A program made the translations under genes and the position numbers. From the NCBI GenBank assembly GCA_001179505.1, contig CDMY01000869.1, positions 124,001-188,000 on the forward strand: a stretch of DNA of 64,000 nt. The letters are read 5' to 3'. The notes under the pieces are model-generated. The model searched no databases and had not been told where the DNA came from. It saw nothing but the letters and a program-made list of their open reading frames with translations. Shown here piece by piece: positions 2,228 to 26,678 of the stretch. Source of the stretch: Vitrella brassicaformis CCMP3155 (lineage: Eukaryota; Protista; Chromerida). Numbering within the stretch: position 1 is the stretch's first letter; each line of letters opens with the position of its first letter.

Positions 2228-3294
2228 AGCTCGGTGTGGTGGCCGATTCGTTCGCCGAGCTGGCCGAGTGATTGCATGCGACCCATCGCTGCAGCACAAC
2301 TGGGTGGCACCGCTGGCGTGGACCATGGCCAAGGTGGGCTGCTCTCACGAGGAGCTGCTCAGACTCATAGGCGAGGCTGGTTCATTGGCGCAGGTGGGCC
2401 GCAAGAAATAGACTCATCAATCATAAGACACACTGACGTGTCTACTGGTCGTGTCCATCAATCAGGGCCTAAGGCTGTATCTGGGGTGAGTCCGCCAGGC
2501 CTACCACACCGAGATCGACGGCGACCTCGGTGCCACCTACCTCCCGTGTGCACATCAGCAGGGGACAAACTTCAAGTTGTTCGGCCGTTCACAAGTCACG
2601 GATGGGGAGAGAGGAAGGACAAGTGGTCTTGTCGAGGCAGTCGATCAGAGCACGCACTGATTGGCTCACACCCACCCACGGGCGTAGGTCTAGAGGCCGG
2701 CTAGAAGGCGGGCTGACTGACTGCTTTCTGTGGGCCACCACTGCTTTCGGACTGACTGACTGTACAGACGAGGGAGGCTGCAAGGCGGCTGGGGTTTTTA
2801 GCGGCCTCCCCACCCCCACTTATCTACACAGACGACTTTGAAGGCAAGGAAGGCAGATCAGAGAGACAGAGGAGCGGGTTTTCCTGGCTGACACAACTAT
2901 GTATGGGAGGGAAATACATAGACACAACACGACAGACACGTCCGATATCTCACATGTCCCTCCACTTGTGATATGTTTCACCTGTCGGTCAGATGGAGCC
3001 GGAACTGTCCGAAATGGAAACAAATCCACTAGCTCCAAACGGGCCGGCGAAAAGATGTTTGGTTTGAGTGGTGAGCTGGCGTTGGGCGGCGTCGTCTTTC
3101 TGGCCGCCAGCCTTATCCCCGAGAAGACACGGCGGAAGCGCAGAAGCCGGATACTTTCCTCTGTCATGGATCACATGTTGGAACTTCTATTGACGGGCCC
3201 GTCTGGCGATGGATTCGTCAGAGCATCCAACTATGTACCGACACTGCAAGTGCCAGGCCTACTCCTTCTTTCATGTTCAATTCCTCTGTCTTAA
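2228..3294 (+). CDS. Possible spliced hypothetical gene or degenerate gene fragment
   Basis: Exon ~2831-2900 (DDFEGKEGRSERQRSGFSWLTQL) joins phase-consistently through gtatgg...ggtcag to YGAGTVRNGNK...ELALGGVVFLAASLI. The upstream piece at 2228-2393 appears frameshifted. Confidence 0.25.
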
Positions 3295-3586
3295 TCTTGT
3301 GATGTTCCCGTGCTTAGTGCGATTGGCTCGTGCCATTAGCTTTCAAAGCACGGAACGACCCACGAGATTGGTTATATCGCTGCCTTCATTTTATATCGGT
3401 GGGGCAATGATCCTAAGATTGAATGTCTGCTGGACCATACCGACGTGTAACGGCGTGGTTGACGTGGTGTGCGGAGACATACACTAGAGGCTGAGACACC
3501 ATCTTCGTGTGTCTTGGCGGCAGTGAATGATTGGCTCTGGACATCTTTGGGTCGGTTTTCCGCAACTATAAACAGTGTTAGGTGAG

Positions 3587-6500
3587 TCAGATGAAGGGGT
3601 TCTCTGCAAAAATCAAAAGCCTTAACGCCGATCTACCCGTGAACACAATAAAGTGGACACCAACGAGGAATAGCCATCCAACAGCTACTATTATCGATGG
3701 ACCGCCCCCCACACGCGAGGCCGCCCCGCTCACAGCGAAATCAGGATACCACATCCGCCTATCCACGTACTCACGATACTTGTCATCACCATCGTCACCA
3801 CCTGTGTCGACGCGCACACGCGATGCGCCCGTGTCGACCCCCTGCTGCACGATGGCGGCGGCGATGTGCATGCTGATGTTGCGGATGCCCGTGAGGCTCG
3901 GGTACACGGTGCCGTGCGCCAGTTCATCGTCCGTCACCATCGATGCAAGCGTCCGTGCGGCCAGAGCAAACACCGAGTCGGGGATGGTGCGCAGCTTGGC
4001 AGAAATGGCACCTGCATGACAGACAGACAGACAGGCAGGCACATGGGGGCAAATGAGGGCACATGAGGGCACGAAGGAATGTGTTGCATTCACTGAGAAG
4101 TAAGTGGTACCTAGGCCAACGCCAGGAAAGACGTAGAGGTTGTTGCCTTGTCCAGGAACCTGTGTGCCACCTACACAGACACGGAGACACAGTGTTGTGC
4201 ATCATGCGGCTGGTTGGCCGGCTCACCGATGCCGAGTGGCCCTATGGGGACGGGGGCGAAAGGGCTACCGCTGGCGAAGATCGTTGAGCTGCCGCCCCAC
4301 TTGTACGCTGACACACAGCATCCCTGGCCTTCCTGCATTGTCTGTCTCTCTGTGTGTGTGCTACCTACCCTCTTCAGCGGTGCATTCGGACTTGGATGTC
4401 GGGTTTGAAAGAGCGAAGATGATCGGCGACTTGCACTGGCTACGCATCGCCTGCAGACATGTACAAGATACATGAGAGACAAAACTGACACACGGGCTTC
4501 TCGTCTGCTCTGTGTGTTGACCTGACCTTGATGATTTTCTCAGTGAAGGCGCCGCCCTTTCCACTCAGACCCAGGAGCATGGTGGGCCTCGCAGCCTTGA
4601 CCACTGAGAAGCAGACAGGCAATAATCGGTGGGGTGTGTTGTGTGCTGATGGATGTTGTCCATCTTTCTCACCCACCTTCGAGGAGTGTGGGCAGCGGCG
4701 GGTCGTCTCGCGCGAATCTCAGCTTGTGTGACTGCATCGCGCCGCTCCTCTGGGTCGTCACCAGTCCTGAATGTACACACACGGTCGACCGGTGGATCGA
4801 CACATCACATATGTATATCTAACATACTCATAACTCGGTGGCTGACCTTTTGAGTCGACGAGCCAGAATTTGTCTTTGGCTTCCGAGTGTGACATGCCCT
4901 TGTCCACCATGTCCTCCAATATCATGTCGGCAATGCCCACCGCCGCCGCACCCGCACCGTAGAAGACGATGGTCTGGTTGGCCCACTCGGACTGCGTGAT
5001 GCGCATGGCGCCCAGAAGGCCCGCCAGAATGACCGTCCCTGTGCCCTGGATGTCGTCATTGAACGACAGCAGCTCATCCCTGATACACACGAGGTCGCCG
5101 TACACGTTTGTATGTGACCGGAGGGCACATCGGTTCACCTGTATTTGCTGAGGATGGGGAAGGCGTGGTCGTTGGAAAAGTCCTCCCATTGCACAAGGGC
5201 CGCCGGCCATCGCCGCCGCACAGCTGACAAACAGACAGACAGACAGACAGTTGAAAAGGTCGGTCGGAAGTGTGCCTGCCTGGCTGTGATTGGTCTGCTC
5301 ACCGCTGACGAACTCATCGACGATGGCGTCGTATGCGTCGCCCTGCAGCCGTGGGTGCTTCTCGCCAATGTACAGCGGATCCATCAGCAGCTGCTCGTTG
5401 TTGGTGCCCACGTCCAACATGACTGATGGGAGTAGCGACACAGAATGGATCGGTGTACACACGTTTTCGTGGGGCAGGTGGCTCACTTGGCAGGACCTTG
5501 GACGGGTGTATTCCCGCGGCCGCCACGTACAGCGACAGCTTCCCGATCGCTATGCCCATGCCGCTGAAGCAATGCACACAGAACACACATCACTATTTCA
5601 CGGACCCACTTATTATTGTCTCTTTGTCGCCTCACTTGGCGCCGAGGTCCCCAAGGCCGAGTATCCGACTGCCATCTGACAGACACGGACGCGCGCAATC
5701 GACCAGCAACGATCCCTTTTTGCACGTGTTCGTCGTTCCTTCCTCACCCGTCACGACGATGATTTCGACATTCTTCTGCGGCCACTGCCTCAACACCTCA
5801 TAGAAACGACCCTGCAAACAGCAAAGGAGGCCGAAAAGAGCACCTCAGGTGAATCGCATGGACACAGCGAGTTGCCAATCAGTGTACCCTGAGAGAGGTG
5901 GACAGGAAGATGCCCCGCGGCTGCCGATAAATGCGGGAAAAGTTCTGAATGCACAAACGCAGACAGACAGAATCGAGTGCATCCCAAAACGCCGACGCTC
6001 ACGCATACTGACCTGGCATGCGATACCGACTGTGGGTGTGTACACGATGGGCATCATGTCGACCACATTCTCCACCAGCAGGCGGAAGTAGAGCACCTCT
6101 GACCTGTCGTGGATGGACTCCAGATACAAATACCGGTCGAAGTCACTCGTCTGCCGCTCGTAGCCATCCTGCACACATACACACAGCAACACAGGGCACA
6201 CAGGCAGGAAGCTTCATTGCAATGTACGAGGGCGTGTGCATGTTGTCCTCCGTACCATCAGCCTTATGATCTGCTGATCCATTGTTTCGCTGCACAGACA
6301 AGTACAGAGCCAGCAACGAGTGGCTGCAATGATAGTGACAGGTGTCTACGTCACGTACATGGCTGGCGGCAGATATCCGTTCAAATCAAGGCGGTCTCGC
6401 TCAGTGGCCGTGAAGGACAAACCCTGACCAAGCACACACGCACATGAAGGGAGGGAGGGAGAGGTACCTAAGTAAGTGCCTGTGTGTGTGTGTCCGTGTG

Positions 6501-6825
6501 TGTGTGTGTGTGTCTGTGATTGCACCTTGCTTGCGATAGGATCACGCAGCACATTGAGAGCAGATGAAGACATTGTGACCATTGCATGACTGCTGCGCGA
6601 CGGACCGACATCTGAAGCCGCCACCATTGACACACACAAACACACGCAACACACACGCAGAGCCCAATCAATGAATCATTCATGTGATCTGGTGCTGCCC
6701 TCACCTGCAGTGGCGTTTCGCCTGTCGGCCTCCAGCTGGTGCCCATGCTGCGGAGGCTTCAGGCCTCCTGTGTCGCGCGCAATCACGTACAAGATCAGAA
6801 TCACACACGGGAATACACGCATCAT
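3587..6825 (-). CDS. ME: Malic enzyme (NAD(P)-dependent malate dehydrogenase, decarboxylating) with N-terminal signal peptide and C-terminal hydrophobic tail
   Basis: Spliced exons give LNVLRDPIASK|GLSFTATERDRL, MMPIVYTPTVG, VVT|DGSRILGLGDLGA|NGMGIAIGKLSLY, MLDVGTNN, FNDDIQGTG, GAGAAAVGIA, WLVDSKG, GSPF and VYPSLTGIRNIS, all canonical malic enzyme motifs with consistent splice phases. Confidence 0.95.
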
Positions 6826-6927
6826 GCCGAGGTGCAAGTGCTCATCAACCGCAGCGACAGCGCCTTCTTCTTTTCCCACATTTGGCATACAGATCTCTGT
6901 GCGAGCTTAGAGTGCAGATCTCCTCTG
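6826..6927. promoter_or_regulatory. 102-bp divergent spacer between malic enzyme and TLDc genes; contains GCGAGCTT-N7-AGATCT
   Basis: ATGs at 6825 (-) and 6928 (+). GCGAGCTT at 6901-6908 and AGATCT at 6916-6921. Confidence 0.55.
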
Positions 6928-8262
6928 ATGACGGCCTCGCATGCATCTGGGTGCGCAGCCATGCTGCTTGCAGCCATCCAAGCGTTGATCTTCGACGTTT
7001 CCAACGCTTTCCAGATCTCCTCTGCTGGACCAAGAATGGCGCTGCCCTATGCACGACGGCGGCTGCATGAGCTTCGCGCGAAGCCCAGTGATGAGGATGA
7101 GCCGCTGGGGCCGCCCGGCATCGCGCCAGGAAGGAAGGTCTATGAGGAGAGAGATGACTGGGTGAGTGTGAGCATGTCAGGCACATCTCTTCAATAGATA
7201 TCTGTCTGTGCGGCTTGTGTGCAGGTGACCAAGGCAGTGAAGTTCGTGTTTGGCTCCAAAGCATTGCAAGACCCTGAGCCGCTGGGTTTTAAGCGGAGCG
7301 GCAAAGAGGCCTTCCCTGGTCAGTGAGTCGCCCAACACACACACACACTCACACACCGCAAGCGAATGGCCCTCCGTGTGTGTTGCCTGCCTGTCGTCCT
7401 GCCGTTGGTTCTGCAGAGTATTACGGCGTCAATCTCGCAGAGTGGGCTGATTTGTTGCCCGAGGATCAAGGCAACAAGGACCTGACACTCATACGACCCC
7501 TCCTGAAACAGACGCGACTTGAGCAGCGGCCCATGCAGCTCATCTATGACGCGTCGAGGCACGGCTGGTCATGTCGGTCATTTCACCAGCGTGTGGACAG
7601 GAAGGGACCGTGTGTGGTGCTGGCCAGGACCAGGGGCGGGAGCATCTGTGGGGGCTACAATGCCGCGGGGTGGGTGGGGGTTGGGGAGCTCAGGGGAGCG
7701 GCGAGCGCATTTCTCTTCACATGGCCTGATGGCGACACATCCAAGAGGCCGCTCAAGTGAGGCTTTCAACACGAAGCACTATGGCCGGCTGTGTCTGCAT
7801 TTGTTGCTGTGCTGCAGGCTGCCGAAGGTTGGTGGTGCGGGTGTGGCGATCTGTGACTTTCCTGACAAAGGGGTCTCCTTTGGCATGGACGGGTGAGCGC
7901 TACCGACACAGCAGAGAGCCGTTATGCATCCGGCGAGAGAAAAGGCGCATTGTGTGTTGGTGTGTTGGTGTGTTTCAGATTTGTAGTGCCGCTGTCGAGC
8001 AGAGAGCCCAACGGTCCTCAAATTTCCTACTCCAAGCTTGGGCCCTACTATTCCCGGAGGAAGGACGGCTTTCCCTCTCTATTCTCCGTCCGTAATCGAT
8101 CGATGTCACGCATCCATGTGAATTGTGAATGTGTGCGTTGTGTGTGGTCAGGGCGTCGAGAAGCGGCAGGCAGAGTTGGTGGAGCTGAAGGTGTACGCGG
8201 GCATCTACAAGCCCGGGGAGGCCATACCCGATAGCAAGGTGAAGCTACTGCAGCTCAACTAG
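6928..8262 (+). CDS. TLDc-domain protein with predicted bipartite plastid-targeting leader
   Basis: Leader MTASHASGCAAMLLAAIQALIFDVSNAF|QISSAGPRMALPYARRRL (signal peptide, then a basic transit-like segment). TLDc motifs LIYDASRHGW..SFHQRVDRKGPCVVLART.GG.ICGGYN..GW and AFLFTW, ending ELKVY...LLQLN* (TAG 8260-8262). Confidence 0.85.
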
Positions 8263-8579: not shown

Positions 8580-8879
8580 NNNNNNNNNNNNNNNNNNNNN
8601 NNNNNNNNNNNNNNNNNNNNNNNNNNNNNNNNNNNNNNNNNNNNNNNNNNNNNNNNNNNNNNNNNNNNNNNNNNNNNNNNNNNNNNNNNNNNNNNNNNNN
8701 NNNNNNNNNNNNNNNNNNNNNNNNNNNNNNNNNNNNNNNNNNNNNNNNNNNNNNNNNNNNNNNNNNNNNNNNNNNNNNNNNNNNNNNNNNNNNNNNNNNN
8801 NNNNNNNNNNNNNNNNNNNNNNNNNNNNNNNNNNNNNNNNNNNNNNNNNNNNNNNNNNNNNNNNNNNNNNNNNNNNNNN
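8580..8879. other. Assembly gap (300 N) followed by a ~20-nt poly-C run
   Basis: Run of n characters directly visible. Confidence 1.
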
Positions 8880-25250: not shown

Positions 25251-26678
25251 TCAGACCTCGACAAGCTTCTTTTCTTCCGCAAAAGTGGCCGGGAGGCTGT
25301 CGCCCATGAGCATCTCCATCCTCATGTCCTCCTCCGCCTCGGCGCTCTCGTCCACGACCTCCTCCTCTCCCTCGATCGCCTCGCCCTCCACACCAGGTGG
25401 CACATCCATCGTCTCCTGGATGCGTGCAAACATCTCCAAGGCATCCTTGAGGTCGATGCCCTCAGGCGTCATGCCGCCCGCTGCCGCCTCGGCGGTCAGC
25501 TGCGCCTGCAGTGCCTCCGCCCCGCCAATGATCTCCGACACCTCCTGGGTGATGACGGCTTGTCGCTTCTTCTGGTAGTCGATCATGAGGGTGCCGGCGA
25601 CCTCCTTGGCGTTGTCAGTGGCGGCCTGCATGGACCGCATGCGCGCCCCCAGCTCTGCGGCGACGGCCTCCTGCAGACACCGAAGGACCTGCCCCTCGGC
25701 GTAGACGGGGAGGAGGGCGTTGATGATGGTGATGGGGTCCTGCAGCAGCTCGAGGTTGTCGATGTCCGCCGCCCGTGCCGGGGAGAGCTCTCGCTTCTCG
25801 ACTCGCACCTTGCCGGAGGTGGGGCTGGTGGTGAGGGTGAAGATCTCGTCGCCCTCGGTCTCGATGCCCTGGGGGGTGAGGGGCACGAGGGTGCGGATGG
25901 CGGGCTCGCTCTTGAGGAGGTTGATGAACTTGGTGTAGACGATCTCGATGCGGTCCGTCTCGAAGTTGATGAAGTCCTGCAGGATGGACCTGAAGATCTC
26001 GCCGGCCTGCTGGGCCGTCGGGGAGGTGGTGCACTCGTAGCCCCTCTCCCAGCCCTCGGTCTTGCGCAAGAAGCTGTTTGCCTTGAGGCCGACCGTCACG
26101 AGCCGCACCTTGAAGTCCTGGTTCTCCAGCTCCAGGATCCTGTCCTTGGCCCGCTGGATGACTTGCGAGTTGTACGAACCGCACAGCCCGCGGTCGCCCG
26201 ACACCACAATGAGCGTGACGGTCTTGGGGTCCGGCCGCGTGTTGAGCAGCGGGATCTCGTTGGTGTCCACGAACTGGGTGGTCTTGCGCAGGTAGTTGAG
26301 CATCCCAGATATCATCGACTGGATGCCAGCGTTGAACGGCCGATTCAAAATCACCGCGTCCTGCGCACGACGCACCCGGGCGGCCGCCACGGCCTGCATG
26401 GCCTGGGTCAGCTTGGCTGTGTTCTTGACTGACGAGATCCGCTCCTTGAGCGTGAAAAGGTCACCCTTGCCCATCGAGATGCCGGGGGAGCGGGGAGAGA
26501 GCGCGCGATGCCTCGCCATGCGGCTGAGCACTGCGCTGTTGGCAAAGCCGTTCCTCCCACTGCCGACGCCTGGGCTGAGGAAGGCAGCACGCGAGGGGGA
26601 GGGGGGAAGGGATCTCGCTGCCGACGCCGTCGCCAATACCGCTGCCACCAGCGGCAGGGACGTGAGGCCACACTTCAT
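25251..26678 (-). CDS. atpC: Plastid ATP synthase CF1 gamma subunit; bipartite leader, intron-free CDS, acidic C-terminal extension
   Basis: LKERISSVKNTAKLTQAMQAVAAARVRRAQ, VVSGDRGLCGSYN, DEIFTLTT, ELGARMRSMQAATDNA and RQAVITQEVSEIIGGAEAL. Leader MKCGLTSLPLVAAVLATASAA-RSLPPSPSRAAF... Confidence 0.96.
   Translation of the reverse strand: MKCGLTSLPLVAAVLATASAARSLPPSPSRAAFLSPGVGSGRNGFANSAVLSRMARHRALSPRSPGISMGKGDLFTLKERISSVKNTAKLTQAMQAVAAARVRRAQDAVILNRPFNAGIQSMISGMLNYLRKTTQFVDTNEIPLLNTRPDPKTVTLIVVSGDRGLCGSYNSQVIQRAKDRILELENQDFKVRLVTVGLKANSFLRKTEGWERGYECTTSPTAQQAGEIFRSILQDFINFETDRIEIVYTKFINLLKSEPAIRTLVPLTPQGIETEGDEIFTLTTSPTSGKVRVEKRELSPARAADIDNLELLQDPITIINALLPVYAEGQVLRCLQEAVAAELGARMRSMQAATDNAKEVAGTLMIDYQKKRQAVITQEVSEIIGGAEALQAQLTAEAAAGGMTPEGIDLKDALEMFARIQETMDVPPGVEGEAIEGEEEVVDESAEAEEDMRMEMLMGDSLPATFAEEKKLVEV

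Follow-up and report, generated by a model that had tools for sequence, protein, structure and literature searches.

Within a 64,000-nucleotide stretch of the genome of Vitrella brassicaformis CCMP3155 (contig CDMY01000869.1, positions 124,001 to 188,000; this whole stretch is the window, and all coordinates refer to it), the minus strand between 3587 and 6825 carries a malic enzyme gene whose leader, complete enzyme and hydrophobic tail are all found on one mRNA. A first-pass annotation of the window, made from the letters alone, had described a malic enzyme with a signal peptide in exon 1 and a C-terminal transmembrane helix, and these features are indeed located there, on the minus strand and in one transcript. 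We favour the reading, with a probability of about 0.5, that the product is anchored as a type I membrane protein whose enzyme domain faces the lumen along the route from the endoplasmic reticulum (ER) to the complex plastid. The predicted layout of a signal plus a C-terminal anchor is seen in no homologue or solved structure examined. The gene and its parts are as follows.

3587..6825, minus strand: malic enzyme gene, 18 GT-AG exons, single open frame after joining
6825-6705, 6611-6526, 6423-6359, 6289-6256, 6168-6013, 5944-5888, 5811-5748, 5675-5636, 5563-5487, minus strand: exons 1-9
5422-5303, 5223-5139, 5079-4847, 4766-4677, 4603-4527, 4450-4369, 4307-4227, 4170-4111, 4011-3587, minus strand: exons 10-18
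6778..6825, minus strand: signal-peptide-like leader, residues 1-16 (MMRVFPCVILILYVIA), based on a 13-residue hydropathy window, transcript contigs and published predictor calls
6553..6777, minus strand: linker, residues 17-60 (44 residues), the rest of exon 1 and most of exon 2, the span including intron 1
3737..6552, minus strand: malic enzyme core, residues 61-601 (VLRDP ... MWYPDF), exons 2-18, based on the translation, Pfam and PDB matches
3590..3736, minus strand: lineage-specific C-terminal extension, residues 602-650 (AVSGAASRVGGG, a hydrophobic helix and RSALRLLIFAENPFI), collinear in the RNA contigs and lacking a homologue in the searches described below
3635..3700, minus strand: predicted transmembrane helix, residues 614-635 (PSIIVAVGWLFLVGVHFIVFTG), based on hydropathy and AlphaFold2, with Arg636 directly after it
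3587..3589, minus strand: stop codon TGA, with transcript contigs stopping 28-49 nucleotides beyond it (3559, 3560, 3538)

Joining the exons on the reverse complement of 3300-6950 gives a coding sequence of 1953 nucleotides, that is 650 codons and one terminal stop, which starts with the ATG at 6825 and encodes a protein of 650 residues with the N-terminus MMRVFPCVILILYVIARDTGG. The joined sequence served to check the frame, compute hydropathy and count codons, and it was compared by local BLAST with fetched proteins. Eight public runs contain the stretch, and X1 and X2 (study P1) as well as X8 (study P4) were taken as spliced RNA because about 40% of the sampled words are present in them. The contigs of the runs, which cannot reveal minor isoforms or true transcript ends, were compared with 2600-7300. 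Fifteen of the 17 intron joints are explicit in contigs of the three RNA runs, each with CT..AC ends on the plus strand, and the joint between exon 1 and exon 2 (6705|6611) is seen in frame in all three. An X2 contig of 1975 nucleotides corresponds exactly to the exon model from 6798 to 3538 and an X8 contig of 2013 nucleotides to the model from 6857 to 3559, the latter carrying everything from the ATG across all 17 splices to the tail and the stop on one contig; as the lengths of these two contigs equal the exon model, the two remaining joints were accepted as well. In the upstream direction contigs reach 6886 (X1) and 6857 (X8). In the three RNA runs the contigs follow the last exon collinearly from 4009 down to where they end, at 3538, 3559 or 3560, so the tail is not spliced out in them, and the 3' untranslated region (UTR) after the stop is very short, with at least 28-49 nucleotides. 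Exon 1 and the 3' end, for both of which a check against RNA-seq had been suggested, are thus contained in contigs of three runs, with the tail not removed. An assembly or frameshift error could be ruled out: between the window sequence and the DNA and RNA runs there are no base differences or indels, and a contig from the DNA run X3 is collinear and unspliced across 3084-6436. Short GT/CA and GACA-type repeats occur in the introns at 5221-5256, 6437-6525 and 6630-6656.

In its core the protein is a typical malic enzyme, encoded by an intact and transcribed gene. Above the gathering score, PF00390 (N-terminal malic domain) is matched by exon 5 (E 1.6e-7) and exon 10 (E 9.4e-12), and PF03949 (NAD(P)-binding domain) by exon 12 (E 1.9e-22) and the last exon (E 1.2e-10), while NADP- and NAD-dependent malic enzymes from the PDB match exon pieces with E down to 1.5e-18. 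The translation contains YTPTVG, GLGDLG, GKL, WEDF, NDDIQGT, GAGAAAVG, SNPT and GQGNN, which align with homologues and which we take to be the catalytic, metal-binding and dinucleotide motifs, in agreement with the earlier statement that the catalytic motifs are intact. Exon 12 contains a VDSK motif that is common to the NADP enzymes 1GQ2 and 2AW5, its best PDB matches; we infer from sequence that the cofactor is probably NADP and the enzyme of the NADP type. Pigeon cytosolic malic enzyme (1GQ2), human ME1 (2AW5) and the SAR324 homologue P0165 have the same architecture of PF00390 and PF03949 and the same catalytic, metal-binding and Rossmann motifs, but unlike the Vitrella gene product 1GQ2, 2AW5 and the bacterial-type large malic enzymes show neither a signal-like start nor a hydrophobic C-terminal extension. 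Residues 51-601 are 50-53% identical to bacterial-type malic enzymes, which end no more than about 10 residues past the position of F601. The core shows 52-53% identity to the SAR324-like P0165 and P0172 versus 43% to the eukaryote-like P0148.

Only three segments of the protein reach a mean of 1.6 in a Kyte-Doolittle window of 19 residues, namely the leader, the GAGAAAVG Rossmann motif (1.72) and the tail. In the leader the best 19-residue window (residues 4-22) has a mean of 1.69 and the 13-residue window of residues 4-16 a mean of 2.92. With Arg3 in the n-region, an uninterrupted hydrophobic core of 13 residues and V-I-A at positions -3 to -1 before Arg17, the leader shows the positive n-region, the core of 7-15 residues and the small residues at -3 and -1 of a cleavable ER signal peptide, as which it is predicted. 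The linker behind it (residues 17-60) contains 3 Asp, 1 Glu, 4 Arg and 1 Lys together with 9 Ser/Thr (20%) as well as the internal Met51 and Met54; its net charge is +1, and the description of the post-signal region as acidic in the first-pass annotation was therefore wrong. Bacterial-type homologues have a median of 15 residues ahead of the core motif, leaving only about 20-30 extra linker residues here, which is short for a putative transit peptide. Four sequons (NAT, NFS, NQT and NIS) are present as had been noticed, and the candidate glycosylation sites are N37, N155, N336 and N554, yet by our estimate four in 650 residues correspond roughly to chance and their evidential weight is lost.

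At the other end, 49 open codons (3736-3590) follow ...RRMWYPDF (F601, 3739-3737) before the TGA is reached, which confirms the continuation of about 50 residues after YVDRRMWYPDF that had been read from the sequence, and residues 616-634 form its best 19-residue hydropathy window with a mean of 2.46. AlphaFold2, applied to the last exon alone, predicted the tail as a helix with a block-mean pLDDT (predicted local distance difference test) of 75-86 over its main part and the AVSGAASRVGG linker as disordered, the tail helix being the best-predicted region of an otherwise poor single-sequence model. Behind the helix there are 15 more residues, RSALRLLIFAENPFI, including two Arg (Arg636 and Arg640) and one Glu. 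The signal for a glycosylphosphatidylinositol (GPI) anchor, which had been considered for this tail, consists of small omega residues, a short spacer and a hydrophobic stretch that reaches the C-terminus. As 15 residues with three charges follow the hydrophobic stretch here, a GPI anchor is unlikely and a transmembrane anchor would fit better. According to the positive-inside rule an Arg directly after a helix is expected on the cytosolic side, and Arg636 directly behind the helix would fit a cytosolic C-terminal end. The candidate signal peptide, the one predicted transmembrane helix and the positive residues on the presumed cytosolic side are the features of a type I single-pass protein. The protein ends with ...AENPFI (3590-3607), and its NPF tripeptide is of the kind bound by EH-domain endocytic proteins, which may be meaningless in a tail of 15 residues.

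Translocation, topology and destination we infer from these features. In the mechanism that we propose, the mRNA would encode an ER-type signal peptide of about 16 residues, a short linker, the malic enzyme core and the 49-residue extension, with one helix and a 15-residue tail having Arg as its first residue. The signal peptide would direct the growing chain to the translocon of the ER, and after translocation of the catalytic domain into the lumen the C-terminal helix would act as a stop-transfer anchor. The enzyme would then be lumenal and, in topological terms, outside the cytosol, with a short tail on the cytosolic side. Its final station would be located between the ER and the four-membrane plastid, that is in the ER, at the plastid periphery or beyond, and not in the mitochondrial matrix, and there it would convert malate and NADP+ to pyruvate, CO2 and NADPH. 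The evidence supports a predicted entry into the ER, while the later targeting signals disagree; a stop-transfer helix argues for retention of a lumenal enzyme in the ER, in the outermost membrane of the plastid or in membranes further along the secretory pathway. The ER-lumenal or cell-surface location suggested in the first-pass annotation is a candidate one, and the signal and predicted anchor on which it was based are encoded in the transcript. The narrower proposal of a membrane-anchored lumenal NADP-malic enzyme in the ER or in the outer plastid compartments (chloroplast-ER lumen, periplastid space) is a possibility that we put forward only tentatively.

We are almost certain that the gene is Vbra_19014. 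Füssy et al. 2019 (PMC6668581) give two malic enzymes for Vitrella, Vbra_17851 (K00027) and Vbra_19014 (K00029), and name atpG as Vbra_19020. In the window an ATP synthase gamma gene (PF00231; motifs LTQAMQAVAAARV and KKRQAVITQEVSEI) is located at 25500-26450 on the minus strand, about 20 kb and roughly six genes away from the malic enzyme gene. It is probably the plastid atpG Vbra_19020, and from this match the malic enzyme gene was assigned to Vbra_19014. A literature search for the identifiers Vbra_19014 and Cvel_1621, the latter being the counterpart from Chromera, found them in no paper of the library searched. According to Table S1 of PMC6668581 both proteins are flagged '@ = SP or N-terminal extension detected'. 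For Vbra_19014 the same source lists TargetP as 'S' with a mitochondrial targeting peptide (mTP) score of 0.036, HECTAR as 'signal peptide' with a chloroplast score of 0.0367 versus a threshold of 0.16, MultiLoc2 as 'ER' with a mitochondrial score of 0.01 and ASAFind as 'Yes, Low' with 1.68 and 1.49, the threshold for Vitrella being 1. As the ASAFind scores are non-zero (0.79 for Cvel_1621), we took SignalP to be positive for both proteins, and the apparent signal of Cvel_1621 also argues that the predicted leader is old and functional. The passages of text and supplement of PMC6668581 that were available do not mention the C-terminal transmembrane tail.

In the same table the K00029 malic enzymes of both chromerids are placed in the third localisation column. 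We take this column to mean mitochondrion, going by how the ribosomal sheet is headed, by the 'M' label of Table S2 and by the text, which assigns a malic enzyme to the mitochondrion. This filing contradicts every predictor run in PMC6668581, and the enzyme is probably inside a membrane-bound compartment and not in the mitochondrion as the published table has it.

Several observations weigh against the type I lumenal reading, and they concern the leader, the translation start and the tail. Regarding the leader, signal-like or bipartite-looking leaders of Toxoplasma can reach the mitochondrion, the apicoplast or both, as in TgSOD2, and the study in question cautions against trusting predictions that lack experimental support. 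The Vitrella protein could accordingly be mitochondrial, or shared between mitochondrion and plastid, with a leader that is an ambiguous presequence as in apicomplexans. The placement of both K00029 enzymes in the published table would fit, as would TgSOD2, TgTPX1/2 and aconitase, which have signal-like leaders and reach the mitochondrion or both organelles. We nevertheless regard this as quite improbable, since neither TargetP (mTP 0.036) nor MultiLoc2 (0.01) points to the mitochondrion and HECTAR calls a signal peptide, an uninterrupted hydrophobic core of 13 residues is atypical of a matrix presequence, and it is hard to see what a C-terminal transmembrane helix would do on a matrix enzyme.

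The low-confidence plastid call of ASAFind for Vbra_19014 is a second objection and leads to a plastid enzyme, in which a bipartite leader would direct the protein via the ER into the four-membrane plastid and the helix would anchor it in the inner envelope or thylakoid with the enzyme in the stroma, where it would provide fatty-acid synthesis or carbon fixation with pyruvate, NADPH and CO2. Both ASAFind scores exceed the Vitrella threshold, the linker is net positive with 20% Ser/Thr, and many true plastid references in PMC6668581 are likewise low in HECTAR and 'ER' or 'extracellular' in MultiLoc2. The residue at +1 of the best cleavage site (after Ala16) is Arg and not Phe, Trp, Tyr or Leu. 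The first-pass annotation had correctly seen that the +1 Phe is missing, but its use of this to exclude the plastid is weak, as Phe at +1 is, according to PMC6668581, weakly and not strictly conserved in Vitrella and thus not required there, and as ASAFind returned 'Yes, Low'. Against the plastid enzyme are the HECTAR chloroplast score (0.037), which is well under its threshold, the Arg after the best cleavage site, the only about 20-30 extra linker residues with 4 acidic residues in the linker, and the stop-transfer helix, which is expected to hold the protein in the ER or the outermost membrane. Plants do have plastidic NADP-malic enzymes, and their thylakoid-bound ascorbate peroxidase is a soluble-type stromal enzyme tethered by a short C-terminal hydrophobic extension; this is a similar tether and counts for a plastid location, although the enzyme is a different one and belongs to a primary plastid with a simple transit peptide. 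Taken together we consider a stromal enzyme rather doubtful.

A third objection concerns the start of the protein, as initiation at an in-frame ATG at 6888, an upstream open reading frame (uORF) or initiation at Met51 or Met54 could alter the N-terminus and the 5' end lies at a contig edge. If transcribed, the ATG at 6888 would add 21 residues before the hydrophobic segment. The uORF is the following feature.

6822..6881, minus strand: uORF in the 5' leader, ATG at 6881, 19 codons, its TGA overlapping the main ATGATG

Starting at Met51 or Met54 (MVTMSSSALNVLRDP...) by means of the uORF or of an internal transcription start would skip the signal peptide and give a cytosol-facing, tail-anchored enzyme, whose helix, 15 residues from the end, would insert post-translationally into the ER or an organelle outer membrane. 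Both Met residues are located just ahead of the core, where ordinary malic enzymes begin, the uORF ends on the main ATG, and the distance between helix and C-terminus is within the usual range for tail-anchored proteins. These, however, have no N-terminal signal, which would apply here only with a start at Met51 or Met54. Since exon 1 is spliced in frame in all three RNA runs and the contigs, which cannot show minor 5' ends, give no evidence for an internal start, we consider such an enzyme very unlikely.

The remaining objections concern the tail, which is flanked by splice-like signals (GT at 3733-3732, AG at 3605-3604) that make a minor spliced isoform possible. Splicing of this 130-nucleotide segment (3604-3733; GCT|GTGAGC ... 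TTTTTGCAG|) as the main isoform was rejected, as it is unspliced in all contigs of the three runs; the hypothetical intron would also shift the frame to an open reading frame that stops only at 3487, beyond the contig ends. The donor-like GCT|GTGAGC at the start of the tail is identical to three real donors of the malic enzyme gene and may be a relic.

In addition, the tail is conserved nowhere among the representative proteins and metagenomes searched. The examined homologues and structures, to which the following results refer, are dominated by bacteria and do not represent a survey across myzozoans. In a set of 129 full-length-like homologues, a median of 4 and a maximum of 17 residues follow the C-terminal W/Y-x-P-x-Y/F motif, versus 49 in Vitrella, and none of the 129 has a hydrophobic tail or a signal-like start. 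A phmmer search with the last exon against 1.84 billion representative proteins gave 362 matches with at most 53% identity, none of them aligned past query residue 106, and a hydrophobic extension is present in 0 of the 99 last-exon matches that bear the C-terminal motif. Solved PDB chains likewise include no homologue of the tail, no signal-like start and no hydrophobic C-terminal extension. Scanning metagenomes with tail peptides as patterns returned only three bacterial-type loci, all without the tail, and a long match in metagenome locus L001 was rejected because it crosses two stop codons into a neighbouring lipoprotein. A profile search with homologues and exons entered as individual rows yielded nothing but generic malic enzymes, most of them bacterial. 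Judged by these comparisons, leader and tail are both additions to the enzyme core.

The codons of the tail are a further point of this kind. The GC content at third codon positions (GC3) is 0.76 in the core but drops to 0.55 over the tail as a whole and to 0.41 within the helix. The tail contains the codons ATA, ATA, GTA, CTA, TTA and AGA, all of them little used or missing in the core; the first four of these (ATA, ATA, GTA, CTA) belong to the helix. The helix value is below all 13 control windows (median 0.68, minimum 0.50), a comparison that is suggestive only, as the controls are hydrophobic windows in coding-like stretches elsewhere in the window, chosen crudely and without gene models. 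Because of these non-optimal codons the tail looks young, and it might be a read-through extension that arose recently and is perhaps neutral or destabilising.

Taken to its end, this would mean that the tail is accidental, the ancestral stop having been lost and translation running into the former 3' UTR without any anchoring, and that the enzyme is soluble in the lumen, secreted or unstable. The codon usage, the very short remaining 3' UTR and the absence of a tail homologue from representative proteins, PDB and metagenomes would all be in line with this, and an open extension alone means little, because 39% of random 49-codon stretches across the GC-rich window (59% GC) are open. The hydrophobicity is a different matter, as only 1% of these open stretches are as hydrophobic as the tail, and when the tail was shuffled with its own base composition 14% of the shuffles were open and 0.5% of the open ones reached it. 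Moreover, an Arg follows the helix as in real anchors, a helix this hydrophobic would insert into a membrane whatever its origin, and the mRNA is found in three RNA runs from two studies. A tail without anchoring function therefore appears unlikely to us, and we regard it as a real, probably membrane-inserting helix of recent origin, which may be former 3' UTR brought into frame by loss of the original stop codon. If it is such a young read-through, the locus would exemplify how a soluble enzyme gains a membrane anchor from untranslated sequence.

Malic enzymes outside the usual compartments are not without precedent, and the statement in the first-pass annotation that the known enzymes are only cytosolic, mitochondrial or plastidic overlooks the membrane-bound enzyme of Mucor and the surface or secreted enzymes of Trichomonas and Entamoeba. 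For Mucor circinelloides, Kendrick and Ratledge reportedly described in 1992, to go by the title of their work, a membrane-bound malic enzyme, which has been suggested to supply NADPH for fatty-acid desaturation. Its likeness to the Vitrella case is malic enzyme activity on membranes, the difference being that it is a biochemical observation in a fungus. We know of no signal peptide or transmembrane anchor that has been tied to this activity. AP65 of Trichomonas and EhME of Entamoeba are surface or secreted malic enzymes, but in contrast to the Vitrella protein both are without a membrane anchor, and EhME, which lacks a signal peptide, leaves the cell by an unconventional route. For the malic enzymes of diatoms a mitochondrial location is predicted. 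In animals hexose-6-phosphate dehydrogenase is the source of NADPH in the ER lumen; if the ER reading is true it would also be a comparable lumenal NADPH-making dehydrogenase, although its fold and substrate are unrelated and it has no C-terminal anchor.

If the type I lumenal reading is true, an enzyme of core carbon metabolism would be located in an endomembrane or plastid-periphery space of a close photosynthetic relative of the malaria and Toxoplasma parasites, and the published metabolic map of chromerids, with malic enzyme in the mitochondrion, would change. NADPH, pyruvate and CO2 would be made where no malic enzyme is known, so that NADPH and CO2 would become available in a compartment for which the redox supply in algae is uncertain, and in a plastid-adjacent location CO2 would be released right outside the plastid, which would be a C4-like step. 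It would also be the first malic enzyme found with a genetically encoded membrane anchor, as measured against a comparison set that is mostly bacterial.

The neighbour of the malic enzyme gene is divergent and encodes a TLDc-domain protein (PF07534; 6897-7760, plus strand), with contigs that reach down to 6897-6932. The malic enzyme contigs extend up to 6886, and the 5' ends of the two genes are thus arranged head to head about 10-50 bp apart. Further along, the assembly has a gap of 300 N at 8580-8879.

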